From the NCBI GenBank assembly GCA_029953675.1, contig JAMWBK010000011.1:1240001-1304000 (forward strand): a stretch of 64,000 bases of DNA, written 5' to 3'. Source of the stretch: Rhodosorus marinus CCMP1338 (lineage: Eukaryota; Plantae; Rhodophyta). Of this stretch, positions 2,470 to 56,955 are shown piece by piece. Position 1 is the stretch's first letter, and each line of letters starts with the position of its first letter. The notes beneath the pieces are model-generated. The model saw nothing but the letters and a program-made list of their open reading frames with translations. It had not been told where the DNA came from and did no database searches. The position numbers and the translations under genes were made by a program.

Positions 2470-3660
2470 AAAAATAAGCCGGGCCAAGGCACACTTGATA
2501 AAACAAGTCACCGACTTCTTGTGAGCTTTTGGAGGACAAGCAGTGGGAGGACAAGAGGTTATTGCCCTTTTCTTGGTAGCATTTATCTTCATCAACACTT
2601 GCATTCCATGGGAAGCTGTAAAAAAAAGGATATCTTCTTTTTTGCACAGCACGGTTTTGCCGTGCTGTCAAGCTGACACCAGCGGTAGTCCACTGCAGAG
2701 CGAGGCAGACAGACATGTAGGGACAGACTACCGAATCACGGGGCTACCAGCCGGTTCACACTTCTTGTCGGCATTGGCCGATAGGATTGGGGTGGTAGAG
2801 GAGGCTCTATCTGTCGAGTTTTCTTCACAGCATGTTTTGCTGAGCATTCGAATTGGGGGAGATGCGATGAGGAAATGCACTCAGGCGTTGGACAGAAAAC
2901 GATGCTGGTACTGCTTGGAGCTGCGTGGTTTGCTAGTTACATTGTCGACCTTCTGTATCCAAAGACCTGAACAACTTTATCAGTATGAGTTTGTAGAGGC
3001 TTCTGCCGAGAACACGGGTATTCTTGGTGGTGGTACCACCAAAACGCTGTCCTAACCGGGACCTCAAGGCCGTATGCGATAGACCAGATTCTGATACGAG
3101 GAGTCAACGCATACAGCGCATAAAACTTACTATATGCTCAAAAGCCCTGAAGTCGCTTCTGGATCTTTTTCTATCACGGCCAACATAATAATATAACAAC
3201 TCCATCCAAGACAGTACCAACCCCAGACGCAGCCATCTAGAATTCTAGGATCAAGCGAAAATCATGCGAGGAAAAAGACGAGGAGCGGATCAAGTTGAGA
3301 AGCAGTTCAGAGCTTGCCAAACGGGAAAATCTGTTTAGTGCAAGCTCCATTTGCCAATTTTCATGCAATGACCACGTTTATGCTCTCGCTGCTCACGAGC
3401 AAGCCGGCCTCAACACGACAAGCTCGCCAACCTCCAGCTTAACAAACAAAAGCTCTTCATGCAGCCAGCTAATAAAACTCCATCTCCCTTTGGACGTAGC
3501 ATTAGCTACTGGACCGTCAAGGACCGAACTGGGTAAGCCCGTGAACCAAACTCGAACGGTGAAAGGGTGCCCGACCCAAAAGATTAAACGAGAGGAACAT
3601 CAAAACCTACTCGGCGAGTGCTGAGACAAACGGGAGTGCAGACTACGAACTAATACCCAC
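2470..3660 (+). mobile_element. Possible decayed non-LTR retrotransposon RT fragment
   Basis: ORF 2543-3055 (LSIRIGG...WYCLEL) and downstream broken frames (HVYALAAHEQAGL) loosely follow LINE RT domains 5-7 and the following GGLGL-like motif. Several stops are present. Confidence 0.2.
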
Positions 3661-4945: not shown

Positions 4946-5067
4946 CTAAAGATGTGGACTGATTTTCTTGGACTGGATGAGGGAGCAACTTATCTGACAA
5001 GAGCAGTACAGTTTAGTGATTGAGTGTGTATTGACGTGTTGTGGAGATTGTGAATATTTGGGAGAAG

Positions 5068-5964
5068 ATGGGTTTCGATTTCAACAAGATACCGGATCAG
5101 AGCGGGAAGGTCGCGATTGTTACCGGCTCGAATATCGGCATTGGGTTTTCTACCGCAAAGCATCTCGTGCTTAACAATGCACACGTCATCATCGCGTCGC
5201 GAACTCCGAAGAAAGGACTTGATGCAGTAGCGGAGCTCAAGAAGATGAAGCCTGACGCCAAGGTGGAGTTCATGCAGCTGGATTTAGCGAATTCGGATAG
5301 CATAAGATCGTTTGCAAACGCGTTTATGGAGAGAGGACTGCCGCTTCACCTTCTCGTGAACAACGCGGGTGTAGCGGGAGTCCCGCACTCCAAGACCGTG
5401 GATGGTTATGAAGTTACGTTGGGGACAAACCATTTGGGGACGTACTTACTAACGATTCTACTGCTAGACACGCTGAAGAAGTCGGCTCCTGCAAGGGTGG
5501 TCACTGTGTCATCGTTGATTGCGAACATGGCAAAGGCCGACCTAGATGATGTGGCGGGAAGGAGCTACGAGAAGAGCAGTATGGGAGTGTATGGGATTAG
5601 CAAGCTGTACAACGTAATGTTCGCGCAAGAGCTTGACAATCGCGTGCGGGCGGACGGAGTTAGGTCGTTTGTGGTGCAACCCGGTGTTGCAAAATCGGAT
5701 ATTCTGAAAAAGACAGAAACAAACGCCCTCACGACGATGATGAAGGGGATGAAGTTTATGATGCAGTCTTCTGACAAAGGTGCAATTTCCACGCTGTACG
5801 CAGCAACATCGGACGAGGTGCTCGCTACTGGAGCATCAAAAATGTATGGACCGAACATGATGAACATGGGAAACACACGAGCAGGGAAGATCTCAAGCAA
5901 GGATGTGACTGCCACCAACAACAGGATCCTTTGGGAGAAGACCCAGGCACTTGTGGGTGTATAA
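5068..5964 (+). CDS. Short-chain dehydrogenase/reductase, retinol dehydrogenase/WWOX-like (copy 1)
   Basis: Intronless, 298 aa. TGSNIGIG cofactor motif, NNAG, GTNHLG, catalytic YGISK. Confidence 0.92.
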   Translation: MGFDFNKIPDQSGKVAIVTGSNIGIGFSTAKHLVLNNAHVIIASRTPKKGLDAVAELKKMKPDAKVEFMQLDLANSDSIRSFANAFMERGLPLHLLVNNAGVAGVPHSKTVDGYEVTLGTNHLGTYLLTILLLDTLKKSAPARVVTVSSLIANMAKADLDDVAGRSYEKSSMGVYGISKLYNVMFAQELDNRVRADGVRSFVVQPGVAKSDILKKTETNALTTMMKGMKFMMQSSDKGAISTLYAATSDEVLATGASKMYGPNMMNMGNTRAGKISSKDVTATNNRILWEKTQALVGV

Positions 5965-7563
5965 GCCTCTGTGAATTTCCCGTTGCTATCGAGGGTTCAT
6001 TGTTAATATTCCGTGCAAATTAAATACACTATCAACTGTTTAACGCTTTGCAACCAGCAACTTCACCGAACGGTTAAGCTTCCGTCTACAAAGGGCTGCT
6101 TGTGATCAGTAGGAGGCTTCTAGCCACAAAGCACCTCCACCCAGTTCGAGGAGGTGATCGCCTGGTGTAAAAGACAACGAGCCTATGCACGTTTCTTGGA
6201 TTTTATGTGGAGATCCATCTCTGTCAACCACGAAGGCCTTCCGCTCCTCTCCGAGAAGATGATTTGCTTTATTGAAAGCGTACTGGGGATCGTGAAGCGA
6301 TGCTGCCAAGACCGCTTCCTAGGCTGTTTCCTATTCGAAATTGATCGACGATGAACGAGAATCCCGTATTTTAACGGAATGAAATTAACTCAGGAAGTTT
6401 AAGCTCCAAGGACCTTGCCTTGGACCTTCTCGAGAAAGTCGTGATCGGCCCATGCACAGCCCTCGAACTCAGACTACGGAAGAACCAATGTAGCTTTTGT
6501 CTGCTACTACATGCCTTTCGGGGAATCTAGGCACGGGTTTGCCCCGCCAGCACAAGGAGACGGAAAACTCGCAAAAATACAAAATTTCAATTTCCGAAGA
6601 AAATCGGAGAAACTAAAGAGGTTTCGGTTTCAGTACTATACGGCCACGAAGGAATTTACAAAGGGTAGAACTTTTTTTGTCTGAGATACAGGTCTGTCCG
6701 ACTCTGATGGCAAGGTGGAAAAACATGTCAAAATCATCAGCAGACCGCTTTTTGTTTAGGTATTAGGTATCCCTGTTTTTACGATTGACCTTACACCTCC
6801 GCCCCACCAGTACAAATGATAAAACGGCGTTTTCATAGTTAACAACTCACAATTGTTAATTGGCGGTAACCCTCAGGTACATCACCCCACTGCATTTATA
6901 TTCATAATTCATACAAGGGATATATTGTTTGGACATTTAAAGTCCTACGATTTCAATTGGCAAGAAAATATCCCCCCCTCCAAACTATTTACTTTGCAAC
7001 TATATCAAATAGAAAAACAAATTGTTTGTATTCTGGGCTCTTGCTGAAGTGCAGGTTGCTGTTAGGGGTGCGCGGAGGACATAATAAATAGTTCCTCTAC
7101 CGTAATCCCGTTTATTAAGTACTTTCTTCATCAAAATTCGGAACTCCGCTTGACCGTACTAAAGGTTAGGGGGTTTCCTCTTTGAGCACAACGCGGTCTT
7201 CTGTTTCCTTCGCTTAGTGTACTCTTTTGAGGAGAAAACTAGTTTTCATGTCAAACTGTATAAATTTTTAGCACTGAGCGAAGATATCAAGTTTTTTGTT
7301 ATTTTTGTTTAGAGACCTCAACTAGACGGGTTAATTGCGTTGAGAATCGTTTTGAGATGCTAATGGTTGTGGCCCATTGCAACTGAAAAATAATGAAAGC
7401 TCCATGGCTCGCTTGGGGATCAACGGCTGTTTTCTGATATATGATTTTTCGTTTTCTTCCTTTTCTTTATGCTACCGGTTTCTAGAACGTAGGCGGAGAC
7501 TTCTGGCAAGAACATGCTGGAGGGGCGGTGCCGCTGTCTGTATGTGAGCAAGTTCCGCAAGGG

Positions 7564-7570
7564 TATATAA
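7564..7570 (+). promoter_or_regulatory. TATA box of SDR copy 2
   Basis: TATATAA lies 130 nt upstream of ATG 7694. Confidence 0.55.
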
Positions 7571-7693
7571 GTCCTCGAGGTACGAACTAGTTTTTCCACG
7601 TTACAAGTAAGGGACTCATTAGAAAAGGGGAATACAGACTAAAGATCAATACCCAAGTTTTGCGTGGATATAGGTGTGATATTTGGGAAAAAG

Positions 7694-8590
7694 ATGGGTT
7701 TCGATTTGAATAGCATACCAGATCAGACCGGCAAGGTCGCGATTGTTACCGGTTCGAACGTCGGCGTTGGGTTCGCTACCGCCAAGTACCTTATGCTCAA
7801 CAACGCACACGTTATCATTGCTTCACGGACCGAGAAGAAAGGACTTGATGCGGTCGCGGAGCTGAAGAAGATGAAGGCTGACGCCAAGGTGGAGTTTATG
7901 CAGCTGGATTTAGCGAGTTTGGACAGCGTAAGGGCGTTTGCAAACGCCTTTATCGAGAAAGGACTGCCCCTTCACCTTCTCGTGAACAACGCGGGTATCG
8001 CGGGGGTAGAACACTCCAAAACGGCTGATGGCTACGAAGTAACGATCGGAACAAACCATTTGGGGACGTATCTTGTTACCACGTTGCTGTTAGACACGAT
8101 GAAGAAGTCGGCTCCTGCGAGGGTGGTGACTGTGTCCTCGCTGCTTGCGAACGGGGCAAAAGCTGATCTTGACGATGTGGGTGGGAAGAGCTACGAGACG
8201 AGCGGCATGGGTGTGTACTCGGTTACCAAACTGTACAACATTATGTTCGCTCAGGAGCTTGATAGGCAAGTACGGGGGGAGGGAGTTAGATCGTTTGTGG
8301 TGCAGCCCGGCGTTGTGAAGTCAGATATTTATAACAAGACAAAACCAACCGCGTTCACAAAGATGATGAAGGGCATGACGTTCATGATGCAGACTCCTGA
8401 CAAAGGTGCGATTTCCACACTGTACGCAGCAACATCGGACGAGGTGCTTGCTACTGGAGCGTCAAAAATGTTCGGACCGAACATGATGAACATGGGAAAC
8501 ACTAGAGCAAGGAAAATCGGAAGCACGGACGCTAATGAGACCAAAAACAAGGTCCTTTGGGAGAAGACACAGGAACTGGTGGCTGCGTAG
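7694..8590 (+). CDS. Short-chain dehydrogenase/reductase (copy 2)
   Basis: 298 aa. TGSNVGVG, NNAG, YSVTK catalytic motif. Confidence 0.92.
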   Translation: MGFDLNSIPDQTGKVAIVTGSNVGVGFATAKYLMLNNAHVIIASRTEKKGLDAVAELKKMKADAKVEFMQLDLASLDSVRAFANAFIEKGLPLHLLVNNAGIAGVEHSKTADGYEVTIGTNHLGTYLVTTLLLDTMKKSAPARVVTVSSLLANGAKADLDDVGGKSYETSGMGVYSVTKLYNIMFAQELDRQVRGEGVRSFVVQPGVVKSDIYNKTKPTAFTKMMKGMTFMMQTPDKGAISTLYAATSDEVLATGASKMFGPNMMNMGNTRARKIGSTDANETKNKVLWEKTQELVAA

Positions 8591-9352
8591 TGGTTGTGTA
8601 GACCGAACAATGAGTGTCATGACCCTGGTCAAGAATTATCTGTTCAAATTTTTCTTCGCAACTACTTTTGATGAGGTTTCCGAATAGCGGGGGAAGTACC
8701 GATGATATAGTACTCTGCCTGTCATTCGACAGAAAATGAGGCCACTCCTGCTCCGGTGCCGTGTGATTGCTTGGTTAACTGCCGGCCTTTTTGGGTTAGA
8801 GCTCCTCAACTTTATATCGGTTTGAGTTTTCTGGGGTTGAGTTGTGGGTATATAGGCAGGCCTCTCTGTGAATCTTCCGTTGCTATCAAGAGTTCTTTTG
8901 TAACATTCCGCGCAAATTAAATACAGTATCAACTAGTAAACGGTTTGCACGTGGCAACCTCACCAAAGGACTACTAACCGGCCAGCTCCAGCCGGCAGAT
9001 ACTTATCCATAGGGGCTTAATCGCAAAAGATCTCCGCCAAAATCGAGGAAGTGATCGCCCAGCGTAGAACAACCTACTAACCACGGAGATCTTTCGTTCC
9101 TCTTGGAGAGGATGATTTGTTTTTGTGAAAATGTAAAGGGAAATCTTGCGGCGACGGGACCTGACCAGTTCCGGGTTGTTTCCTACTCGAAATTGATCGG
9201 TTTTGAACCACGGTCCTACAATTTAACGGAATGAAATAAACACTGGAAGTTTAAGCTCCAATGACCTTGCCTTCAATCTTTTCCTCAACGTTGTCATTGG
9301 TAATGCTGGGCGCGCGAACTCAGGCTCCCAACAACCGACGAAGCGGTGAAAC

Positions 9353-10155
9353 ATTTATAATGGGAATCGACGGAATTTAAATGTCTAGACAATATTTCTG
9401 TTGTACGAATTGAATATAAATGAGGTTGTGTGATGTATGTGAGGGATTCTCGCAAACCAACAGATGTGACTCATTAACAAATGAAAACGCTTTGGCGATT
9501 TACGCGAATAAGAGCAAAGGCCGTGTGAGTTTTAGATGTTTTTCCAATGGTGTCCGTCGGGGTTGGGTGAGGACGGACGTCTTTGTCTTTGGTGGAACTG
9601 AAGGTCAGCGACAGTAGTATCTAACGCTTTTGTAAAATATCGTATTTGTAGTCTACTCATTAGTGCGGATACGAAAACCTAAATCTTGTAATAATTCTCA
9701 CTACCCACACCACCAAGAAGTCAAGCACATACAGTCGCCCCGCCAGCACAGAACGTGTAGGGAGAAAACAGACACAAAATACAAATTTCAGCTTCTGAAG
9801 AAAATCTGAGAAACTAAAAAGATTTAGGTTTTCGTATCCGCACTAATGAATAGACTACAAATGCGATATTTTACAAAAGCGTTAGATACTACTGTCGCTG
9901 ACCCTTTCCCAAAGACAAAGACGTCCGTCCTCACCCAACCCGGACGAACACCATTGGAAAAACATCTAAAACTCACTCGGCCTTTGCTCTTATTCGCGTA
10001 AATCGCCAAAGCGTTTTCATTTGTTAATGAGTCACATCTGTTGTGGGGGGTGGGGGTTGCGACGATCCCTCACATACATCACTCATTTATATTCATAATT
10101 CATACAACAGAAATATTGTCTAGACATCTAAATTCCGTCGATTCCCATTAGAAAT
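9353..10155. repeat. Inverted repeat, ~335-bp arms (9353-9687 / 9819-10155), ~130-bp spacer
   Basis: The arms are near-identical reverse complements. The ORF track shows the same peptide (AIYANKSKGRVSFRCFSNGV) on both strands. Confidence 0.9.
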
Positions 10156-12472
10156 AAAATACACCCCCTCACGAGCTATTTAATTTCAAGCTATATCAAA
10201 TAGAAAAATAAATTGTGCATATTCCATACTGATGCCCCCCCTCAATTTTCGGTTGGAATGTTCAGAAGAACTGTTTGTCGATTGCTAGAGATGACCGTAA
10301 AATCGTATTGAAGAAACTTTTTGTATGGAGGCGATTCTTATGGAGAGAAGTGGTATCGCGGTTGATTTTTGGTGGATTTTAGCTGAACGCTTGCCTGAAA
10401 TTCGTGTCGTTGTGTATCGTTTGAGAAAGCAGTGTAATTCCGCGTCCCACATTCACAAATCCCGTTTATTGAATACTTTCTTCTTCAAAATTTGGACCAG
10501 CAAACCGCGCTAAGAAGACCGGAACCTTGGTCGTCATTCTTTTGTCACTCTTTTGAAGAGAAATTGGTTTTTTAAGTTAACTGTAGGAATTGGAAAGTCT
10601 ATATATGAAAAAGGTCCGTGGTACTGAGCGAAGGTATCAATTATGTTTCTTGTTTTGGGCAGGGTTTTAAGGACTGGAAGCTTTTGACGATACAGAACGC
10701 AACACGTGTTGATTCTGTAGAGTAGAGTGATATCTCGCGCTGCGTGGAGCTTTTAATAGTGGTTTTCATCGCTATATCAGAAAGCTTTATGTACACATAC
10801 ATGAAAACCGAATTTGACTTAACGCATTTGTTTACTTTTTTAATGGCTGTAGGTTTCTAGAAAGTAGGTGAGGATTTCTAAGCAACAAGAGGCTGCAGGG
10901 GCGGAGTGGCTGCTTGCATGTGAGCTCCTTAAATCCCTTCCACGGGTTACTTTCACGATCAACCGTTTTCTTTCCTGGGAAACTGTGCTCTTTAAGGAAG
11001 ATTGTCTCTTTTTTGCATACCACCATGCTAAGACTTTCTTGTTTTGCGACTCTTTCTTACGTGAAAATTGGATGAGAGGGTGAAATGTGGATGCGGACTT
11101 TAGAATAGGAGATTATCCGAATTGTATACGTACTCAAACTGTGGACGATGTTTTGAAGACTAGCCGCGAAGAGCGCATCGGATGAAAGAAGCGCTTGCTG
11201 GAATGACTAGGGGCTTGTCCCGGACGAGAGGGCGTATGTGCGAAGCGTTTATTTATGGGTTAAAATACACCGATTACAGTGTTGGCCAGTGCCTGCAATA
11301 GGAATCGAATCTGTTCGTTAAGTTCCACTCGTTTACACAGTACCGTCATCAACAACCTCGGCTCTCGTTCCGAATAAGAATCTTGGAATTGGACTTGGCT
11401 CTTCAATCGATACATACTGTCATTATTGATAACAATACGAAGTCGAACAAGCAAGTCTTCAACATCATCTACTCACCATCTTGAAAAACAACAAGTTCAA
11501 GAATATGATCATTCCTGCTAATCAATTTTCTGTGAGTCCTCCCCAACCACATCAACAACCGCATTCGTTTTTTCTTAATTCACTAAACCCATTATTGGAT
11601 TTGCCAATAAATATCGAACTTCGCCACAAGTCCTTTGTCAATTATTCATAATTCATTGAAAGGACCCTTGGCGTTCATACTTCCTTGATTCCAAGTAGCA
11701 ATATTTTTATACCCCCCCTACCAAGTCATCTCTAACTCCAAATATTTATAAAACACAAGTTGAGCCTATCCAATTCCCCCTTCTGCTTGTACCAAAAAGG
11801 GGTCTATGGAAAACAACTTAAATATATTCAAATAATAGGTATGAATTCCGGAGCGCGAAATGATTGATTTGGTTTTGGTACTCTTTCGGAGCTACAGTTG
11901 TAGTAACTTGCCAGCGGATAGAATATTGAAATAGAGTAGACATATTGAGGATATGATTGAAATTCTTTAAAGAAACAGGTTCAATTACCCGTCCGACAAA
12001 ACGGGTCAGATAAAAGGGGTCCGATAAATGATCGTCCTATATTCAATCAACGTTAGTCCGGAGAGCGAAAATGGATAAAAGCAACTCTTCCAATACTTTG
12101 CGATGTCTAAAGTACGGATCGGAGCAAATGGATGGATTTGTGGTTGAAGCAGCTTTTTCAATACTGAAGTTGCCTAATCGACAGCGTTCGACAGCGTTCG
12201 ACAGTGCTTGACAGTGCTCGCCCAAACCCATCTGCTTTCTTGTATGCCTTTGGGCGGAAAAATGACTGCGCAGCTTTGAAACGAGTACAAAAAAGAAAGA
12301 GGCCGGGTCTGCGCTGTGAAGCAACGCCCAACTTCCATAGATCGTGTTTATTGATTGCTTTGATTGCTTTCATAGTCATCGTTTTGCGAAGCCATGCCTT
12401 CCGTTGGATTTTTGATGGCCATCGTCTGGATGGGCGGAAAATCTGGTTGTCTATGACCAAGTTCCCGCAGGG

Positions 12473-12603: not shown

Positions 12604-13500
12604 ATGGGTTTCGATCTGAATAAGATACCAGATCAGAGCGGCAAGGTCGCGATAGTTACCGGTTCGAACGTCGGCGTTGGGTTCGCTACCGCCAAGTACC
12701 TTATGCTCAACAACGCACACGTTATCATTGCTTCACGGACCGAGAAGAAAGGACTTGATGCGGTCGCGGAGCTGAAGAAGATGAAGGCTGACGCCAAGGT
12801 GGAGTTTATGCAGCTGGATTTAGCGAGTTTGGACAGCGTAAGGGCGTTTGCAAACGCCTTTATCGAGAAAGGACTGCCCCTTCACATTCTTGTCAACAAC
12901 GCAGGCATCATGGATGTCGAACACTGCAAGACGGTTGATGGCTACGAAGTAACGATCGGAACAAACCATTTGGGGACTTTCCTTGTTACCTTGGTGCTGT
13001 TAGACACGCTGAAGAAGTCGGCTCCTGCAAGGGTGGTGACTGTGACATCGCTACTTGCTAACGGGGCAAAAGCTGATCTTGATGATGTGGGTGGGAAGAA
13101 CTACGAGACGAGTGGCATCGGTGTGTACGGGATTAGCAAGCTGTACAACATTATGTTCGCTCAAGAGCTTGATTGGCGCAACAAAGCAGAAGGAGTTAGG
13201 TCGTTTGTGGTACAGCCAGGTATTGTGAAATCGGATTTGATAAACAAGGCAAAACCAGGTGCGTTCTCGGTCTTTGGGAAGTGTTTGCAGATAGTAATGC
13301 AGACTGCCGACAAAGGCGCGATTTCCAGCCTGTACGCTGCAACATCGGACGAGGTGCTAGCTACTGGCCCATCAAAAATGTTTGGACCGAATATCGCTAA
13401 CGTGGGAAACACTGGAACAAGAGATATCAAAGCCAAGGACGTTAACAACACAAACAACAAGGTGCTTTGGGAGAGGACCCAGGAACTTGTGGGTCTGTAG
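12604..13500 (+). CDS. Short-chain dehydrogenase/reductase (copy 3)
   Basis: 298 aa. TGSNVGVG, NNAG, YGISK. Confidence 0.92.
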   Translation: MGFDLNKIPDQSGKVAIVTGSNVGVGFATAKYLMLNNAHVIIASRTEKKGLDAVAELKKMKADAKVEFMQLDLASLDSVRAFANAFIEKGLPLHILVNNAGIMDVEHCKTVDGYEVTIGTNHLGTFLVTLVLLDTLKKSAPARVVTVTSLLANGAKADLDDVGGKNYETSGIGVYGISKLYNIMFAQELDWRNKAEGVRSFVVQPGIVKSDLINKAKPGAFSVFGKCLQIVMQTADKGAISSLYAATSDEVLATGPSKMFGPNIANVGNTGTRDIKAKDVNNTNNKVLWERTQELVGL

Positions 13501-15148
13501 CTGCGGTAGGCTGCCCCATGAATATGGCCACGATCAAGAGTTAGTGTTAATATAGCGTGCACAATAAATAAATCATCAACTAGAAAGCGTGTTCCCAAGT
13601 AGCTACCTGCCCAAAACGCTTAACGTTGGCTTTGTCCTGCCTACAGATTAGTGTGGGTTTCTAGTTGCAAAGGTCCTCAACCCAATCTAAGCAAGTTCTT
13701 GCTAGCATGAAGAACTCCGTATGTGTATTAGTACATGGAGGGCCTTCAACCCTTACCCACGTCGCAGATCTAGAGTTTCCAGTTTTATTTTCTTGCTTTG
13801 CGCCGAAAATGTCCAAAATGGGTTGATCAATGCTGTAGCGTCCAGGCGCAATGATTATAGTATTTCAGTAGTTTTTAAAACTATACGAATTTTAGTAGTT
13901 TCTTGGAATGGACAGGTGTCGACGTATTTCAAACAATCGGAGGTCCGGAGGAACACGCTCGACTTTCTTGGGTGGCTGTTGTAAAACGCAGTGATTTGAT
14001 CTGACCTCTACTTCAGAAATAAGTTATATCAAGTACAACCGAAGTGTCTAAGTGCTTAATGGAATCCTTCAGGCAATATCTGATGAAACTTCCCATTCCA
14101 AAACCGCCGGAGAAAGAGGGTTCGACAGGAACAATTCCACTTTCGTGAAATTCCCCTCCACGCAAACCGCTCAATACGATTCAATGGTGAAGCTCACACC
14201 AATACGCAATCGATACAATCCACTTAAGAACTAACTCACCCGTCTCAAGAATTTCAACTTCTGCCTTTACTGCAAACCTCTCCTCCTCTTTTCCCTCTAT
14301 GCCATGCTATCACCCTCGGACTTGCGATATTATACTGAGTCCACTTCTCGCTAATCGACGGTTGCTAACACTCATCATGCACGTAGAAAAATTATTAAAT
14401 TGATATGACAGCTGTCAGATTCAGAAATTATCACTATTCAATGCCAGTGTCCGAACTCCAACAGGGGCAATTGGTCGTGTATTCGAGTTGAAGAAACTCA
14501 TCTCCATGTTGGGTCGAATCCATTTGCCCGTCCCACATGTTTGTTTTTGTAAGCTTTTAGATGGAAAGATCCGGACCGAGGGAGGGAACATTATATGAAT
14601 CATGTTTATTGTGTACTTTTCATAGTAACATTTGTATTCTCGGTGAGCGTGCACTTACTCAATAAGATTTTCGCTGTTTGCGCGTCACCAGTTCAATGTT
14701 TTCTCGTTTTATGTTTGTTTCTTGTTAGAAGATTGGGGGTCGGAAGAGGAATCTTGGTTGCTAAATTTTGCGAAGTATTGGAGAGTTAGTTTCATTTTGG
14801 CGGAAGCGATTTAATTTCGTTTGTTTTGTGAGGGGTTTCCCTGTCGGTTTCCTTACCCGATTTTTTAGAAACGGGTGGCGTCGGGGTTGCTCGGTGGATG
14901 AACTGACATGTTGGTAGTTGATGACGACGATCCATGGATTGCGATGGAAAACACAGGAAGCTGGTCCGTTCATTGGAGCATCATCATGAAATCGTGGCTG
15001 TCTACGAGCAGAGTTGGAAAGGCATAAATACCCAAGGCGTTGACCATGTTTTCGGACTGGCTGTGACAGACCTATCAGACAGGAGCGAGACATAGCAGGG
15101 ACCAAGTACTGTAGTTCTTTGAGCTAAGAGTTTTGATATTCGAGGAAG

Positions 15149-16030
15149 ATGGGTTTCGATTTGAACAAGATACCAGATCAGAGTGGCAAGGATGCGATTG
15201 AGACCGGTTCGAATATCGGCATTGGGTTTTCTCCCGACCAAGTACCTTATGCTTAACGACGCTCACGTTGTCGTTGCTTCACGACCGTCAAGAAAGGGCT
15301 TGATGCGGTAGCGGAGCTGAAGAAGATCAAGCCTGACGCCCAGGTGGAGTTTATGCAGCTTTAGCGAAATCGAATAGCACAAGTTTGCGAGCGCTTTCAT
15401 AGAGAAAGGACTGCCGCTTCACCTTCTAGTCGACAATGCGGGTGTCGCGGCAATCCCACACTCCAAACCGGTTGATGGCTACATGGTAGCACTCGGAACA
15501 AACCACTTGGGGACGTCCCTTCTTACGGTGTTGCTGTTAGACACTCTAAAGAAGTCCACTCCCGCGAGGGTAGTCACTGTTTCCTCGATGGTTGCGAACG
15601 GTGCAATGGTCGATCTTGGTGACGTGGGTGGGAAGAGCTACGAGACGAGCAACATGGATGACGGGACTAGCAAGCTGTACAACACCATGTTCGCCTAAGA
15701 GCTTGATAGGCACTTCCAAGCTGAGGGAGTCAGGTCGTTTGTGGTGCACCCCTTGTGTCGTGAAATCGGATATGCTTAAAAATACAGAAGCAAAGTGCGC
15801 TCACAAAGATAATCAAAGGCATGAGGCTCGTGATGCAGTCTCCTGACAACGGTGCGGTCCCCACCATGTACGCAGCAACATCCGACGAGGTGCTCTCTGA
15901 TGGAGCGTCAAAAACGTTTAGACCGAACATCGTGAACGTGGGAAACACTCGAGCAGGAATCGTCGGAAGCAAGGATGCCAATAACACCAAACACAAGATC
16001 CTTTGGGAGAGAACCCAGGAACTTGTCTGA
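15149..16030 (+). pseudogene. SDR pseudogene (copy 4)
   Basis: Colinear with copies 1-3 from MGFDLNKIPDQ to WERTQELV. It has a frameshift near 15235, further indels, a premature TAA at 15696-15698, the catalytic Tyr lost (MDDGTSK vs MGVYGISK), and the TATA-position motif reads CATAAATA. Confidence 0.9.
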
Positions 16031-16090
16031 TTGTAGGCTGCTCTACAAATTCCCTTCGCGCTCCCAAAATAAGGTGGATTTGTGCTAGTA

Positions 16091-16258
16091 TGTTAGGAAG
16101 TGGTCAGGTCGAGCTGGACATCGACCACGGTCCGACGACTAGTATATGTGGGTTATTGATAGAATTAGTGTTGCGCTGCATTAGGCAGTTGCCGAGTAAA
16201 GTTTACAGTTACGAAACCAAGACTTGTTACGCCTGTTGGCAGAGTTGACATCCTAGCA
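16091..16258 (-). mobile_element. Putative short LTR (~168 bp)
   Basis: Bounded by TG...CA with imperfect terminal inverted repeats (TGTTAGGA / TCCTAGCA). It lies 3' of the minus-strand gag. No matching full partner LTR or TSD was found. Confidence 0.4.
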
Positions 16259-16526
16259 CACGTCCTTGAAACATGTCGATGGAATCTATGAAACGTGTAC
16301 CCCTGGATGGAAACAGACGTGCGGGGCGAGACATATCGTGTAGAGACTCTGAGATGATTTAGAAGAGGTGGAGGAAACCTTGCGAGGCCCATGTAAGGCA
16401 AGTTTGTTAGCATACTCTTGAGGGATACTCCAAGGTGCGTAAGAAAGTGTCAGATACGCAAAAGGTATTGTATGCTCATACACTTTCTGTTCCAAGAGGT
16501 TGGGAGCCCATGTGGCATATTGAATT

Positions 16527-17098
16527 CTAAAGCGTTGGGTTTGATGTTTGCGTTGGCCTTCGGACACCTTCCAGGCGGGCTCTCATGGTTTCCCAGTCGA
16601 GTTGGTCCTTGGAAATGTTCTTCAGGCCTTCCATGGTTGCATCGAAGACGCTTTCATCCTTCAGGATCAGGTATATGTGACCCAAATGCTGTATGGCTTT
16701 GTACTCTGTTGTATCGAGTTTAAATGCTTTAGAGTAGTATTTTTCGAGCCATGTGAGTAGCCCTAGCGTCGTCTCATCCGGTTTCAGTCTCCTTGAGAGA
16801 AAATTCCACTTGCCTCTCGATTTGTGCCGCTATCGTTTTCGTGACATATTTCTTTTCCAGTTTGTTCATAAGTTCTGTTGCATCGGTTGTCTCTTCCGCT
16901 ATCCGCATCGCTTCGGCTCCTAGGTTGAGTTTTATAAGCGACGCAGCTTGGGATCATTTGTCGACGCTATCCTCTCCCAAAAACGGCGTCGTGTAGTCCA
17001 GCCAGCTTGAGTCGTTCGATAATGCTGGATTTCCAGTAGTTGTAGTCGTCAGGGCCCTCCAACTTTGGGCATCTAAGGAAGCATCCCACGGCGTCCAT
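16527..17098 (-). mobile_element. Ty1/Copia gag remnant (frameshifted)
   Basis: Minus-strand MDAVGCFLRCPKLEGPDDYNYWKSSIIERLKLAGLHDAVFG...LGAEAMRIAEETTDATELMNKLEKKY fits the Copia gag N-terminal KL.G..NY..W pattern. Frameshifts and stops are present. Confidence 0.7.
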
Positions 17099-17116
17099 CC
17101 TGCTGCACTAAATCAA

Positions 17117-17173
17117 ACCACCTTTCTTCTTCGTAAGACCACCTTTCTTCTTCGTAAGACCACCTTTCTTCTT
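17117..17173. repeat. 21-bp tandem repeat (2.7 copies) in the Copia 5' leader
   Basis: accacctttcttcttcgtaag twice, plus a partial third copy. Confidence 0.9.
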
Positions 17174-17214
17174 GTCCTTCTCTTCTTTTTTCTTTTTTTT
17201 TCAAACTTAAAGCT

Positions 17215-17225
17215 GGCTCAGAACC
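17215..17225 (-). promoter_or_regulatory. Putative primer-binding site of the Copia element
   Basis: Minus-strand GGTTCTGAGCC, ~115 nt upstream of the gag ATG. It resembles the half-tRNA-Met type PBS GGTTATG(G/A)GCC. Confidence 0.45.
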
Positions 17226-17249
17226 GGTTGACAAAGTAGGTGTTTATGT

Positions 17250-19332
17250 GCCTGTTGCTTTAAACCATAGAGACCCCTGTTTAGCTTGCAGACCTTGCCA
17301 TTGTCTTGTGTGCCTGGGGGTCTCTCCATGTATATCTCCTCATCGAGTTCACCATTGAGGTAGGCCGTCGATACGTCCATTTGCTGCACATCGTAGTTAC
17401 GTTGTGCTGCCAAAGATAGCAGCACTCTGATGCTCTAGAAACTGACCGTCGGTGAGTAGACTTCTGTAAAATCTTGCTGCTGGAAACCTCTTGCAAGCCG
17501 AGCTTTGAATTTCAGCGGCTCCCCGCTCTCGTTCCGTTTCAGTTTGAAAACGAGGTTGTTGCTTAACACTTGCTTATCCTTTGGACTGTCAACCAGTGAC
17601 CAGGTCTGGTACTTGCTCAGACTTTCGAGCTCGTCCGCGATTGCTTTCTCCCAATACTTCGCATGGGGTCCGGTGAGAGCTTCCTCGATAGTTTTTTTTT
17701 TTTTTTGAGGTTCCTTGAGTATCGTTAAGTTGCTCAACTTGGGTTTCGCTATCGCGCCTGACCTTATTTGTCAGGGTAAGTTTGTCACTTCTTTGACTTC
17801 TTTCGCTGTTAGCTCGTTATTTTCACGTTTTTAGGTGTTGTTGTCAGGTTTCACGTCTTCATTGTCAGGTCCGTGATGGGTTTTGTGAACTGGTGTTTCT
17901 AGTTCGTCTTCGAGGCTTCAATGGCTCCTGAATCCGACTGATGTAGTCTTTCGCTTTGACGTAGTCGATGGCTTCTTGAATGTCTGGCGTATGTGCGGTT
18001 TGGGGTTTCTTCAGAGGAAAGGTTTCCTCCTGCACAACGATGTCTTTCGTCCATCGTTTGCGACCATCTCCGAGTTGGATCAGGTGCTTGCCGCTTCGTT
18101 CACAGCGGAGTAAAGTCCCACGCATCGTTGGTACGTCGAGCTTGTCGCGTCGCATGGTACCATGTTCTTTTGGTGCGTGCGCGATCGCTAGGCAGCCGAA
18201 CGGGTACATATTTTTGAAGTCGTCTTGCTTGCCGGTGAGTATTTTCCGGTGGCATTCGTTGTTGCTTCGTCTTGGTGAATTCGCGATGATTGTCTGCTTT
18301 CTGCTTCTTGCCAATGTACGAAATCGGGTTTCCGTATAGGTATGCGACAGCGCCGCTTACGGATTTTCGGTCCTTTGGTGATGCCCATGAAGCGTCTACG
18401 TACAGTGTGATCTCCTCCTGTTCTTGACAAAGAGAGAAACTAGTGATGCGTTGATTGTGCCGCGTAAGTACCTTAATATTCGCTTACCGGCTGACCAGTC
18501 GTCATTATTGAAACGTTGCGCCTTTGTGGCTAGTAGTCTAACCGCGTACGTTATGCTGGTCTGGTTCTTGTGGAGATGTACAGTAGGGCCCCGACAAGTT
18601 CACGGTAAGGGTACTCTTCTTGCCTTCCGGACTTATCCGTTGGTATGTAATACTTCGTCATCGGCGTTGGCACCGGTTTGCTCTCGTGCATTCTGAATTA
18701 CTTGAGTATCTTCTCGATGCACTTCTTCTGCCCCAAGGAGATGGTTAATGCGCTTGGGTCTCTCTCGATTTCTATGCCGAGGTATTCTCTAGCTGCGCCG
18801 AGGTCTTTCAGATCGTACATGGTGTGTAGCTGCTTCTTAACTTTTGCCACCTGCTGTCTGCTTCCGATAATTAGGAAATCGTTGACGTATACGAGTAGGT
18901 AGACGCCTCCTTTACGAACACACACGGGTCTGCAGTTGCTGCCTTGAGCTATGACCTTGTAGGTCTTTCCTTAGCTTCTCGTACCATATTTTTCCTGATT
19001 GGTACAAGAGTACCCGCATGAGCATTAGGATGCTCCGATTGACTCGCTCCGAGATCCCGTTCGTTTCCGCGCTGTATGGGGGCGTCGTGTCCAGCCTGAT
19101 CCCTAGCTTCTTGAGTTTTTCTTGCATGCCAATGTATTCGCCTCCTCCGTCGGAGTGAACGGTAATTATTTTTTTGACACGACAAACGCTCGAAATCCGC
19201 CATATATTCATCGAATGCCCCCTCAGAGACGTCGTTTTTTCTTTGTATCGGGTACATTTTTGTAAATCTCGAGAGTACCCGCATGAGCAGTAGGATGCTC
19301 CGATTGACTCGCTCCGAGATCCCGCTCGTTTC
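17250..19332 (-). mobile_element. Ty1/Copia pol mosaic (integrase, RT and RNase H pieces in permuted order)
   Basis: RT motifs QQMDVSTAYLNGELDEEIYM, LYGLKQ, YLLVYVNDFLIIG and DLGAAREYLGIEI. Integrase motifs VHSDGGGEY and PPYSAETNGISERVNR. RNase H start YVDASWA. Many frameshifts. Confidence 0.9.
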
Positions 19333-20900
19333 CGCCCTGGAGAGACGATTCACACGGACGTCTGCGGAAAGCTGCCCAAATCGAAAGAGGCAGAATACTG
19401 GGTTGCCTTTACAGAGGAAGTATTGAGATTTACAAAAATATACCCGATACGAAGAAAAAACGACGTCTCTGAAGCATTCGATGAATATATGGCGTATTTC
19501 GAGCGTTTGTCGTGTCAAAAAAATAATTACCGTCCACTCCGACGGAGGAGGCGAATACATTGGCATGCAAGAAAAACTCAAGAAGCTAGGGATCAGGCTG
19601 GACACGACGCCCCCATACAGCGCGGAAACGAACGGGATCTCGGAGCGAGTCAATCGGAGCATTCTAATGCTCATGCGGGTATGCTTGTACAAGTCAGGCA
19701 TAGAGAAAAGCTCCTGGACGGAGACCTACAAATTATCCAGAGGATACTGAACGTCGTAACCCCAGGCTGACCAAGACGAAGCAACAACAAAAGCCACCGG
19801 AAAATACTCACCGGCAAGCAAGACGACTTCAAAAATATGTACCCGTTCGGCTGCCTAGCGATCGCGCACGCACCAAAAGAACATGGTACCATGCGACGCG
19901 ACAAGCTCGACGTACCAACGATGCGTGGGATTTTACTCCGCTGTGAACGAAGCGGCAAGCACCTGATCCAACTCGGAGATGGTCGCAAACGATGGACGAA
20001 AGACATCGTTGTGCAGGAGGAAACCTTTCCTCTGAAGAAACCCCAAACCGCACATACACCAGACATTCAAGAAGCCATCGACTACGTCAAAGCGAAAGAC
20101 TACATCAGTCGGATTCAGGAGCCATTGAAGCCTCGAAGACGAACTAGAAACACCAGTTCACAAAACCCACCACGGACCTGACAATGAAGACGTGAAACCT
20201 GACAACAACACCTAAAAACGTGAAAATAACGAGCTAACAGCGAAAGAAGTCAAAGAAGTCACAAACTTACCCTGACAAATAAGGTCAGGCGCGATAGCGA
20301 AACCCAAGTTGAGCAGCTTAACGATAATCAAGGAACCTCAAACCATCGAGGAAGCTCTCACCGGACCCCATGCGAAGTATTGGGAGGAAGCAATCGCGGA
20401 CGAGCTCGAAAGCCTGAACAAGAACCAGACCAGACATAACGTACGCGGTTAGACTACTAGCCACAAAGGCGCAACGTTTCAATAATGACGACTGGTCGGT
20501 CAGCCGGTAAGCGAATATTAAGGTACTTACGCGGCACAATCAACGCATCACTAGTTTCCTCTCCTTGTCAAGAACAGGAGGAGATCACACTGTACGTAGA
20601 CGCGTCATGGGCATCACCAACGGACCGAAAATCCGTAACCGGCGCTGTCGCATACCTATACGGAAACCCGATACAGTAGGTGAAGTAAAACTTACTGGCA
20701 GAGATCGATGTGCCGGCATTACCTACCAACATCTTCTCAGACAACACTGCTTGTCTCACCAGGAGCATAGACCCGGAAAAGCCTCTACCTCAGCATATTG
20801 ATCTTCAGTACCAATTTGCACGATAGCAACACGACCTAGGAAGCTACGAGTTCCTATTCGTCCCAACCCAGGAGCAAGTCGCGGATATACTCACCAAGAC
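19331..20900 (+). mobile_element. Ty1/Copia pol fragment: integrase core, RT start, internal deletion, RNase H
   Basis: PGETIHTDVCG...HSDGGGEY...NGISERVNR, then TIEEALTGPHAKYWEEAIADELESL fused at ~20425 to RPDITYAV, KRILRYLRGT, YVDASWA and ending QVADILTK. The integrase-before-RT order is diagnostic of Copia. Confidence 0.9.
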
Positions 20901-22030
20901 GTGACTCCTTTCACCACGAAGACTTTGTCACAGTTGCTGATACAAATGCCATCCTAGCACGTGGGCCTGGAACGTGCTGATGACCGACAATAAGGGCGTG
21001 CAGACTCTAAGGGAGTTTGATACGGAGAAGCTTGTGATCGTCCTTGATGTGATAATACATCCGGATCTCTTTCCGTTGAAGAAAAAGCGCTCCACCCTGC
21101 CGCTGGTTAATGACCTGGTCCCGCTACCCAATGAAGATGATTCCAATGATGAAGAAATTTTTAAGCTGGTGCATCCGAGTACGCCGAAACCGAAGCCAGA
21201 GGTTGCCTGAGCTCCGCTGTTTTCAGGCGTTCGCAGACCAGCTCCAGGTTACACTGTCCACGTCTCTAGTGATGAGCGCTTCCAACATCCACTCGTATCT
21301 GGAATGTGCACCTTTTGGAGTGTCCAAGGATATACAGTGTCTAGTACAAACAATATCATATAGAAAATTGTCCCCAAGTAGCTATCTCACTGATGGGATC
21401 TTAGGCTTCCCCTTGCGATAGCCAGGGGTAGGATCGGATCGACTACCGGTTTGGTTGCACAGTCGTCGGCGTTGACTATGTTTGAATGGTAGGCGATGCT
21501 ATGATTGAGTGGTAGCTACGACTACGTTTGAAGCAGAGCTGCGACTATGTTTGAGTCGCGCGGAAGGCTATAAAAGCTTGCTCTAGGCCGAACTTGGGAA
21601 GGTAGGAGAAGAGTAAAGCAACGATCTCTGGGTACAAGTGATATCAGACTTGTCTAGGTTTGTTCAGGGGTTCTTGCTTTTGGGAGTCTTTCGGGTATGG
21701 GAGGGCGAAACTTTGTAAGAGTCCTTTATCACCATGTGCGTATACACATGGGGACTCACCTATACGGTATAGCGCACCTACCGGCTGGAGCCTAGGTACA
21801 ATTCAGTTTGGGTTTTTACCTCGAAAGGTTCTCGGCCGAATCCAAGACATGCTTCGCCAGTGTAAAAGATAATGTCTCTTACGTGGAGCGCTGTAACCCC
21901 TAAGGTCAGCCTTGGTGTTGGATATAATTCTTGCTTTGTTGAAATCGTACTCTGGAATGGTGCGGCTTGCTGTCCGACCACTTCGTAGATTGTAACTTCT
22001 GCGAAGTTCATCAGTTATGAACAACGTTTC
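20900..22030 (-). mobile_element. Probable further LTR-element 3' fragment with a chromodomain-like ORF
   Basis: On the minus strand, 20959 starts TGCTAGGATG like the putative LTR at 16258, and 20960-21030 resembles 16260-16370. ORF 21803-22024 has a chromodomain-like pattern. GACTAYGTTTGA repeats and a TATAAAA lie at 21475-21575. Confidence 0.35.
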
Positions 22031-22518
22031 ACTTGGGACTCAATCTTGAAAGTTAGCAAGAGGCTGAGTTTGATTTTTCTCCGCAAGCTGTCATTGACCA
22101 CGTTAAGAGCTCGAACTCAGCCAGCCCACTAGCCCTTGCAACAACAATCCCTCAATGGCCAGAGTTGTCCGGACCGCTCAATCCACTCAAGGCCGCGGAA
22201 GACCCGCTCTTGTTCATGGCCATAGATTGCTGCCGGTTCCATCCATTGAAGACGATGGTGGAATCTCACAAGAGCTTCAAGACCGCTGCCTGCTGCTCAG
22301 ATGATGAAGTTCTTTACTCGAACCTTAAACAGCAAACGAAGCCGCCAACAGATCAGTCCACGATTCCCCTTCTCCAAGTCTTTCCAGTTTTCGCGCTGAA
22401 GAAATCTCACAGCAGACATCATGGCAAACCATAGGCACCACAAGAGCCCGTCGTATCTAGTTTTCAGTCGGAGTATGATAAGACGTCTCTCGACGGTGAA
22501 ATCTGCGGCCTTTGAATT

Positions 22519-54751: not shown

Positions 54752-56955
54752 CTTCTCTACTTTCTGAACCGTAAAAATCTGCAGGCCGATCCCAACACAA
54801 TTAACCCCACACACTGTCAATCCCTCAAGTCTCCTTGACCTTCGCCCTGATCTTCAGGCTGCTTTTGACAGCTTGAGACTGTCCACCTTAACCCCTTAAG
54901 TACTCTACCACCTTTCCACTTGGCTCCATAGGCGAACAACAAGAAATCACGGCCCTGGCGCAAGGCTTGGAATGTATTGGTGGCGCTCATCACCGTCAAA
55001 CAAAATTCGTTCATCACCAGTCTGCAAAGCGCTAGTAAACGTCCACATTCTCCAGTAAACGTCTGCCTCCGCTGAAACTGATAGCAGATATATTTTTAGT
55101 GTATTTCAAGACCAAGGAAAAGGACGACCTTTCCTGATTGGACAATGATCGTCAAGCTTTGCCTTGGTAGCGCCCGTCTATTAATAAACCCTCTCTCGGA
55201 AAGATAGCGGACAAGCGCTTTGGGCCATTGCGACAATCAGTTGGTCTGAGCTCCCACAATACCCGGATTGAGAACTGGTTTGATTGCCTGAAACCCGATT
55301 CTGAAGGCTTCCAAAAAAGGAATCATGTTCCCGCTCAATAATCTACAGAAAAAACCTTTGAGTAGGTCACGCTCCAACCAGAAAGGCTGCACGATCGCCG
55401 CGGCGGCTTTTGGTGAACGTTGCGCAATCAAATAAGAATGTATCCAGCTAGGTTTCATTCATATCAAGTTTTCGGTTTGAATTCAATCTAGTTTTCATGT
55501 TTCCCCAACCCGATTCCTTAACATCAGATCCAATAACAAGGTTCGAGCTTGACGCTTAGTTTTGGACTCTGATTAGGCCTATGCAGGTTGAATTACCTTC
55601 AACGCGAGCATTCGTAGTACGGTGCAATCTATGCTGCTCTGTATGGAACCCGGAGAAGGACTCGCTCAAGGTTTCTCGTTCACGGCCCGTGCGAGAGATA
55701 GCTAGGTCCGAACCTCCGATACGAGTTGGCAATGGACAAAAACCAGCATTCCCTAAATACTTCAGTTTTCTTCTTCTATTCAGTTTCTCAAGTTGTGACG
55801 CTTCTCAGCTCCTTCAGCGCGGTCAAACGTGGCAACGGCAACTACAATCCGCTTTGGACACCGGCTGGAGAGGTCAGTTCTCCGGACAGTCAACTATTTG
55901 ACGTCCATTTTACAAGCGTGCTGCTACAGTTGGACCCGGCAGAACTTGACGCTTGGATTCTCGTCTCATCCACAATGCCCTTGGATGTTGTAAAACATAC
56001 AAAGTATACGATTCCGTGCGAAATCTATTCCTCTACCGAGTGCTGTTCAAAAATGCGGCTTCTACGATGATACCAACCCTCGATCTTGCTAACCAGGCGA
56101 AAGAATTCCCCTTTATTCCCCGTCCTTATCCATTGCGCGCTATGGACTATGCATTGGAAAATAAGGGCCACCCTGCGTGAGGACCGGTTTTGAAGGGGGG
56201 GAAATGAATGATTGGCAAATAAGCAAAATTTTATCGTTTATTCATTGGATGAACGCAAAACGAATAGACAGTACAACTTAGTATTTTATGACTATGAGTA
56301 TCTGTGTATACGCAGATTCTTTATATTAGTACCAATAACGCGGATTTTGAATTCTTAAGGGATTATGACTGCTAAATCTGGACACTAAACCTCTTCTGTT
56401 GGTCATAGAGCTTGCATGTATTTTTGTTGAGTACTTCAATATATTCTGGAGTGGAACACGCAACAGATTTCAAGTTCAGAAGAGGAAATGCTGCATGCGT
56501 CAACCCCATAAAGCTTTTTCAATCGAAGGAAGGCTCTGCTGAACTCTTTGTTTCAGCTCTTCCTATACGAAAGTGATCCGAAGCTTTTGACAATTCAAAC
56601 GAAAAAGCGAAGGAGTTATGATTTCCGTAAATACTCTCAAGTACGAGAAACGAACTCCAGAAGCTTGTCCATCCACAAAGACTTGATGTTGGCAAACTAG
56701 GACAGACTGCTCAAGTATCCGCCGCTTCTGTTTTCGCACTCTCCCCGTTTTTCCCCTCTTCTAAAAGTCAAAGTAGAGCTGCAAGGAGGCCGATGGTTTT
56801 AGGATTTACACCACTGCGTGCGAATATTCCCAATTTTTGTCAATGGTACCAGGAAGAGGTAAGCAGATCTTTGCTTGAGAAATCCGCTTTCGCGGCAAGG
56901 TCGACCTTGCGGCAGAAGATGACTTCACAGTAGTAAGACATCTCTCATCATGCAA

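Follow-up and report, generated by a model that had tools for sequence, protein, structure and literature searches.

A Copia retrotransposon remnant in the red alga Rhodosorus marinus with a block-permuted sister copy on the opposite strand

How does one retrotransposon come to lie opposite a scrambled copy of itself? The question is raised by a 4.4-kb structure in a 64-kb stretch of the genome of Rhodosorus marinus CCMP1338 (GCA_029953675.1, JAMWBK010000011.1:1,240,001-1,304,000; hereafter the window, whose coordinates are used unless another locus is named), in which a plus-strand Copia copy (P) truncated within integrase meets a minus-strand copy (M) whose blocks stand in altered order. R. 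marinus is a unicellular red alga with a 31-Mb nuclear genome that takes up much organelle DNA and is rich in nuclear mitochondrial DNA segments (NUMTs); its assembly used NextDenovo on Oxford Nanopore GridION reads, followed by three rounds of Pilon polishing (PMC10250338). The two opposed sister copies are the remnant of a dead Copia element, and we lean towards the explanation that they were made by replicative, microhomology-guided serial template switching with a fold-back.

Two opposed copies of one element

Repeat finding and BLAST recovered three inverted matches between the strands: 17603-18276 against 20431-19770 (674 nt, 96.3%, E=0), 18323-18571 against 20672-20418 (255 nt, 96.1%), and 18994-19270 against 19698-19425 (277 nt, 95.3%, with a spacer of 154 nt). 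In addition, 19007-19074 is directly duplicated at 19272-19339 (95.6%). The same searches found no further copies of this Copia family elsewhere in the window. Read along the minus strand, M therefore consists of B'' (19339-19272), B (19270-18994), D (19001-18277), C (18276-17251) and A (17250-16533). Percentages in the following list are identities to L001, a copy of the same family on another contig.

16533-17250, minus strand: M block A, with the U5 end, a primer-binding-site-like (PBS-like) site, leader and gag; 89-93% to L001 3940-4377 and 5128-5358
17251-18276, minus strand: M block C, with the integrase C-terminus (SH3-like), a linker with two stops and the first half of reverse transcriptase (RT); 90.2% to L001 9850-10856
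18277-19001, minus strand: M block D, with the second half of RT and the first part of RNase H; 92.8% to L001 10849-11545, then 13238-13266
18994-19270, minus strand: M block B, the integrase catalytic core with an rve match; left arm of the central palindrome
19272-19339, minus strand: M block B'', 68 nt duplicated from the end of block B and lying next to the fold-back junction
19340-20983, plus strand: P, the 5'-truncated sister copy from integrase core to pol end, without a long terminal repeat (LTR); colinear with L001

Domains were called with Pfam on frame-corrected translations, and gag and the blocks were also mapped by tblastn. P contains the rve integrase core, SH3_retrovirus, the start of RVT_2 and RNase H; its end lies no earlier than 20960, where pol ends, and probably at 20983. 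It carries two deletions, K2 (junction 20418-20431), which removed the middle of RT, and K3 (between 20672 and 20673), which removed about 96 nt of RNase H. Block C holds SH3_retrovirus and positions 1-126 of the RVT_2 profile (E=8e-35), and block D holds positions 123-243 (E=1.5e-15) plus RNase H, both RVT_2 matches lying above the gathering score. The gag of block A gave a weak Pfam match, to Retrotran_gag_4, and was placed by tblastn. The RT stretch missing from P is retained in M at 17252-17602 and 18572-19000. Gag and mid-RT are unique to M, and a 70-nt segment (g), the integrase start and the RNase H end are unique to P.

The initial annotation of this DNA, made from the sequence alone, had assigned integrase, the RT start and RNase H to the plus strand, and an extra integrase piece followed by B, D, C and A to the minus strand; the inverted matches, the domains and the 68-nt duplicate bear this out. 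It had also read the end of C as LYGLKQ and the start of D as QSG, correctly, and its proposals that C and D were once contiguous and that the RT lost from P survives in them agree with the positions given here, the RVT_2 coordinates and the adjoining L001 matches (9850-10856 and 10849-11545). Its outer limits need to be redrawn: P does not end at 20900, block A ends at 16533 rather than 16527, and the structure does not reach back to 16091, as 16091-16532 belongs to other elements and holds a non-LTR 3' end and other Copia-like fragments.

The canonical order of the family

A protein search with block C gave two R. marinus proteins as best matches, and their loci are L001 (JAMWBK010000010.1) and L002 (JAMWBK010000008.1). 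The first is a colinear copy of the same family, 88-93% identical; the second belongs to a related family (71-76% identity) and also shows the order B-C-D in its tblastn block map. The canonical order A-B-C-D was set by block-by-block mapping to L001, the sole same-family comparison copy, and is backed by the colinearity of L001, the RVT_2 profile coordinates and the block maps of L001 and L002. A search for further copies with gag recovered just two sequences, the gene in L001 and a 965-nt contig whose family is 72% related. The L001 copy, which is broken up by foreign insertions, maps as follows.

L001 3940-4377 and 5128-5358: leader and gag
L001 6129-6206: integrase start
L001 9525-9789: B
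L001 9850-10856: C
L001 10849-11545, resuming at 13238-13266: D
L001 13322-13527: RNase H end
L001 13624-13680: pol end

P is colinear with L001 6129-6206, 9495-10508, 11281-11533, 13322-13527 and 13624-13680. As in Ty1/copia elements, the reference copy has the order gag-protease-integrase-RT-RNase H with RVT_2. A PBS-like site may pair with the anticodon stem-loop of initiator tRNA-Met, judged by the form of that tRNA in other eukaryotes. Integrase lies upstream of RT in P, L001 and L002, and M departs from this only through its rearrangement. Unlike intact Ty1/copia elements, the copies described here have no LTRs, have undergone truncation, deletion and permutation, and are unable to transpose. 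No LTRs of the family were found around the L001 copy or in the window, and neither place showed the flanking direct repeats that two LTRs and a target-site duplication (TSD) would provide.

One lineage

A three-way alignment of M, P and L001 over the common parts of B, C and D contained 68 derived sites that set M and P together apart from L001, with 17 sites specific to M and 9 specific to P. Two in-frame stops (TAA and TGA) in the integrase-RT linker are common to M and P, at positions where L001 has sense codons. Substitutions between M and P are homogeneous across the blocks, at 9/254 in B (3.5%), 13/659 in C (2.0%) and 4/249 in D (1.6%; chi-square p=0.27), and the arms overall differ by 2.4% substitutions plus indels, or about 1.2% per lineage since the split. 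B'' and B share a GGGTAC substitution where P and L001 read GGGTAT. No mutation bias resembling repeat-induced point mutation was visible between the arms in this alignment. Because derived sites and stops are shared and divergence is equal across the common blocks, the comparison identifies the M and P blocks as one Copia lineage, already dead, and not as nested subfamilies. The initial annotation had allowed for distinct nested subfamilies with LTRs and TSDs of their own; the shared substitutions and stops speak against these, as does the search of the block boundaries, at none of which an LTR-like direct repeat or a TSD was found.

Junctions and the reused motif

Every junction was aligned to both parental sequences. 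The seven junctions comprise five in M and the two deletions in P, and five of the seven have 2-8 nt of exact microhomology, mostly inside imperfect patches of 7-16 nt; J1 and K3 share only 1-2 nt.

19333-19339: J0, the fold-back from antisense integrase to the integrase start, with a 7-nt patch CGCsCTG in both parents (6/7)
19270-19272, minus strand: J1, B'' to B, with 1-2 nt shared, yielding a tandem duplication of about 265 nt
18994-19009, minus strand: J2, B to D, a crossover in a homeologous patch, TTGTACC-AGCCAGG (integrase) and TTGTAAAGCAATCAGG (RT)
18271-18277, minus strand: J3, D to C, with microhomology CAyCAAG and ACCAAG
17247-17258, minus strand: J4, C to A, at a CAAnCAGG motif, GCAATCAGG (RT) and CAAtACAGG (leader)
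20418-20431, plus strand: K2, deletion in P, with a 13/15 patch containing ACCAGACC
20672/20673, plus strand: K3, deletion in P, with 1 nt shared

The leader form CAAtACAGG of J4 is seen in L003, a related transcript-like contig, and is partly lost in L001. CAAnCAGG stands at three breakpoints, the end of B, the C/D boundary and the start of A, and this accounts for the C/D boundary having been used twice. The end of C and the start of D overlap by about 8 nt (L001 10849-10856); C ends where D begins because the motif was reused as a breakpoint, so no precise cut is needed there.

Proposed template switching with a fold-back

In the serial template switching that we favour, the growing chain would have begun as an antisense copy of P, run on to the broken 5' end of P within integrase, and folded back at the 7-nt inverted patch of J0. 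From there it would have copied sense segments, beginning with 68 nt of integrase (B'') and the integrase core again (B), and going on to late RT and RNase H (D), the integrase C-terminus and early RT (C), and the U5 end, PBS-like site and gag (A). Four further jumps would follow J0, each landing on 1-8 nt of common sequence, and the same chain could equally be read in reverse. Cutting and rejoining alone would not yield B'', which is a true duplication, so the process was replicative at least in part. That all of this happened in a single event is something we infer from the economy of the scheme. The polymerase may have been that of break-induced or fork-restart DNA synthesis, or a reverse transcriptase whose aberrant complementary DNA (cDNA) was captured at a chromosome break; three points speak slightly for RT jumping with cDNA capture, namely the lack of any complete LTR, the abundance of NUMTs and a second, independent fold-back in L002, and the two routes proved inseparable.

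The anatomy corresponds in several respects to known rearrangements. Microhomology-mediated complex rearrangements attributed to microhomology-mediated break-induced replication or fork stalling and template switching (MMBIR/FoSTeS; PMC2621351), fold-back inverted duplications (PMC3907307) and templated inverted insertions at breaks (PMC11724301) are precedents. The proposed chain agrees with the traits that define MMBIR/FoSTeS and fold-back duplications: the inverted arms lie close together, a number of short segments were templated in one orientation or the other, there are small duplications, and most joins show microhomology. Unlike MMBIR/FoSTeS events, which are mainly human copy-number variants of kilobase to megabase size arising de novo, this is an old 4.4-kb event in a red-algal transposon, read in one assembly and followed by 2.4% divergence. 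Yeast captures Ty1 cDNA where its chromosomes break (PMC11372161, PMC1976456), and the likeness here lies in the presence of internal retroelement sequence only, with no complete LTR or TSD, in joins by microhomology, and in a host that captures organelle DNA. In contrast to the yeast insertions, which are mostly tens to hundreds of base pairs, the blocks here are kilobase-sized, the source already carried two stops, and a role for RT is conjectural. The Foldback (FB) transposons were considered and set aside, since the arms here are Copia coding sequence and the sole tandem repeat is the 21-nt leader array (2.7 copies).

Several points weigh against this account. The junctions are undated relative to one another, so the single event is an argument from parsimony only. 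The direction of synthesis read from retained parental bases is inconsistent, J2 pointing to sense and K2 and perhaps J3 to antisense; with the junctions contradicting one another, this reading was not used. Present-day P cannot have been the template, because M holds gag, mid-RT and leader that P lacks, and some other template has to be assumed, whether RNA or an intact copy, sister or ectopic. That M and P are each other's closest kin appears so from sequence comparison with one other same-family copy and is unproven genome-wide. Finally, the structure rests on one Nanopore assembly.

Other explanations

Could ordinary decay have produced the same order? Tandem duplications (J1, J3, J4), deletions (J2, K2, K3) and truncations could have accumulated over time in an inverted sister pair, with the instability of inverted repeats as the driver, which we regard as unlikely. 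Every junction type is ordinary on its own, and a path of duplication, deletion, duplication and duplication with two truncations reproduces M; K2, with its 13/15 patch, indicates that simple deletion at an imperfect repeat does happen here, and the approximately 1.2% substitution per lineage since the split of M and P leaves enough time. However, about six structural events would be needed within 3 kb while the neighbouring genes stayed intact, and each duplication would have to lose its second copy almost exactly.

Alternatively, C and D might have formed a circle, closed at J3, whose recombination at the 8-nt motif CAAnCAGG with a linear copy bearing a pre-existing B-to-A junction inserted one unit as B-D-C-A; the fold-back with P and the B'' duplication would be separate events. 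When a circle and a linear molecule cross over once, the product always contains a single permuted unit flanked on either side by the motif, as is observed, and the ACCAAG microhomology of J3 is what circle closure would be expected to leave. This origin nevertheless covers only J2, J3 and J4, leaving J0 and J1 as extra events, and needs a prior backward junction from B to A that is itself unexplained. In addition, retroelement circles and autointegration products join LTR tips, and none of the junctions contains one: J4 joins RT to a point inside U5, block A beginning about 24-36 nt inside it, and the other junctions have no LTR sequence, so that the usual 1-LTR, 2-LTR or autointegration circles do not apply. 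We consider the circle distinctly unlikely.

We give very little credence to an assembly artefact, a wrong join within a repeat of Nanopore reads that were themselves chimeric or folded back. The contig is indeed a product of GridION reads, NextDenovo and Pilon, and inverted repeats are a known trouble spot, but the arms are 2.4% apart in substitutions, differ by indels as well, and have sequence unique to each. A strand-chimera would yield near-identical mirrored arms and not a permuted order, and reads were size-selected at 6 kb, more than the 4.4 kb that the structure spans. That several copies or subfamilies inserted independently, nested or side by side, and were later truncated is barely credible: the patch does contain remains of other elements (the 3' end of a non-LTR element, and a pol end and PBS of divergent Copia-like type), but the block boundaries lack LTRs and TSDs, the substitutions and stops that mark the lineage are common to P and the blocks, and the block coordinates are complementary (the end of C is the start of D), with microhomology joins inside coding sequence.

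The initial annotation had proposed template switching, during reverse transcription or break-induced replication, or circle excision and re-insertion, rather than simple nesting. The fold-back, the order and the microhomology joins stand, and simple nesting is contradicted; reverse transcription, break-induced replication and circle integration proved inseparable, and each of them we infer rather than observe.

The locus has no evident function. It is a non-functional remnant and a new example of an already known kind of rearrangement, revealing neither a new kind of element nor a function. It does offer a tidy natural case of multi-step template switching in red algae, where rearrangement mechanisms are almost unstudied, with each breakpoint readable to the nucleotide and one 8-nt motif accounting for breakpoint reuse.

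A second fold-back lies in the RNase H of L002 (11148-11538), where a sense stretch reaching 11247 is followed by an antisense one (11247 to about 11453) and, from 11478, by sense sequence once more. Its inverted arms, 11148-11225 and 11247-11324, are 92% identical around a 21-nt loop. This sense-antisense-sense layout is the pattern expected of two template switches, and it is independent of the fold-back in the window. Since independent fold-backs occur in two of the three loci examined, we raise the tentative and doubtful idea that R. marinus Copia elements are unusually prone to strand-switching and serial jumps, through an error-prone RT whose aberrant cDNAs are captured at breaks in a genome that takes up much organelle DNA as well. 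If this were true, Copia strand-switching would routinely create transposon-derived hairpin loci.

Hairpin potential of the palindrome

The tight palindrome of integrase arms claimed in the initial annotation is present, between 18994-19270 and 19425-19698 (95.3%). For its further idea, that the palindrome could give rise to hairpin RNA against the family, the support is a predicted fold. Folding of 18990-19700 predicts an almost perfect long hairpin at -560.6 kcal/mol, where shuffled sequences average -207.7 (z=-62), and a transcript across the centre, if made, would by this prediction fold as a hairpin of about 277 bp. The near-perfect 277-bp inverted repeat with its 154-nt spacer, and the further arms of 674 bp and 255 bp, resemble inverted-repeat small interfering RNA (siRNA) loci. 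Unlike the arms of nested hairpin siRNA loci, the C and D arms cannot pair together as nested helices because the blocks are permuted, and their simultaneous pairing would require a pseudoknot.

Leader and putative primer site of block A

Block A begins about 24-36 nt inside U5, and the surviving U5 is 17227-17250. The LTR end CTACTTTGTCAAC lies at 17227-17239 (minus strand). The adjoining base at 17226 is C in M and A in L001; the A would give the end CAACA, which we take to be typical of copia and Ty5 LTRs. Just after the LTR end is the PBS-like site GGTTCTGAGCCAGC at 17212-17225 (minus strand). The site recurs at about 3964-3977 in L001 and at 260-273 in L003, where it reads GGTTATGAGCCCAG. 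This L003 form is presumably complementary to the initiator tRNA-Met anticodon stem-loop as that tRNA is known in other eukaryotes. The leader contains a tandem repeat at 17117-17173 (perfect, 21 nt, 2.7 copies) that is single-copy in L001, and gag follows at 17098-16533 (minus strand) with frame breaks. By analogy with the half-tRNAiMet primer sites of Drosophila copia and yeast Ty5 (PMC5371799), these red-algal Copia families would be candidates for half-tRNA priming.

Flanking sequence and neighbourhood

Fragments of other elements occupy the sequence to the left of block A.

16160-16212, plus strand: 3'-terminal fragment of a non-LTR (RVT_1) element, 87% to the last 53 nt of the L001 6206-9495 insertion
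16216-16282, plus strand: fragment resembling the 3' end of a divergent Copia pol, from a local alignment to P 20916-20983
16473-16515, plus strand: LTR-end/PBS-like motif of a different Copia-like element, from nhmmer with a three-sequence leader/PBS profile

The first is probably a 5'-truncated copy of the RVT_1 non-LTR element. The alignment of 16216-16282 with P 20916-20983 scored 21.5, against a shuffle mean of 11.8 (standard deviation 1.5, maximum 18). A weak Smith-Waterman match in the flanks pointed to the motif at 16473-16515, which is the best nhmmer match in the window (E=0.014) and is identical to L003 240-274 at 26/34 positions. It stops 22 nt before the inverted gag of block A, and two primer-site regions therefore face each other across gag. 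Smith-Waterman comparison of 16041-16215, 16283-16533 and 20984-22500 with L001, L002 and L003, evaluated by shuffling, gave no further element blocks at z>5. An open reading frame (ORF) at 20974-21210 was considered as the integrase C-terminus of another Copia and dropped, as it has no Pfam match.

The public annotation runs two intron-containing gene models across the transposon blocks, at 16615-18902 (plus strand) and 19223-20732 (minus strand), with products of 206 and 199 amino acids that have no Pfam match. Both models are probably spurious, and the locus is useful in flagging them. To the left of the transposon patch is a tandem array of four short-chain dehydrogenase (adh_short) paralogues with protein identities of 59-82%, the fourth of which adjoins the patch; to the right is a NIF-phosphatase gene, from about 22519.

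5041-5964: adh_short paralogue, ORF intact
7664-8590: adh_short paralogue, ORF intact
12604-13500: adh_short paralogue, ORF intact
15137-16027: adh_short paralogue, with frame breaks

In L001, a 3.3-kb non-LTR retroelement at 6206-9495, with a 730-amino-acid RVT_1 ORF and GGTTACC flanks, splits the Copia copy. Several copies of a 0.75-1.7-kb repeat lie at L001 4377-5128, 11545-13238 and 16661-19294; two of them sit inside the Copia copy, and one pair is 99% identical. Elsewhere in the window, 56180-56618 shows 67-75% similarity to the part of L001 that precedes its Copia leader (2951-3488), and this repeat may be LTR-related or another dispersed repeat.

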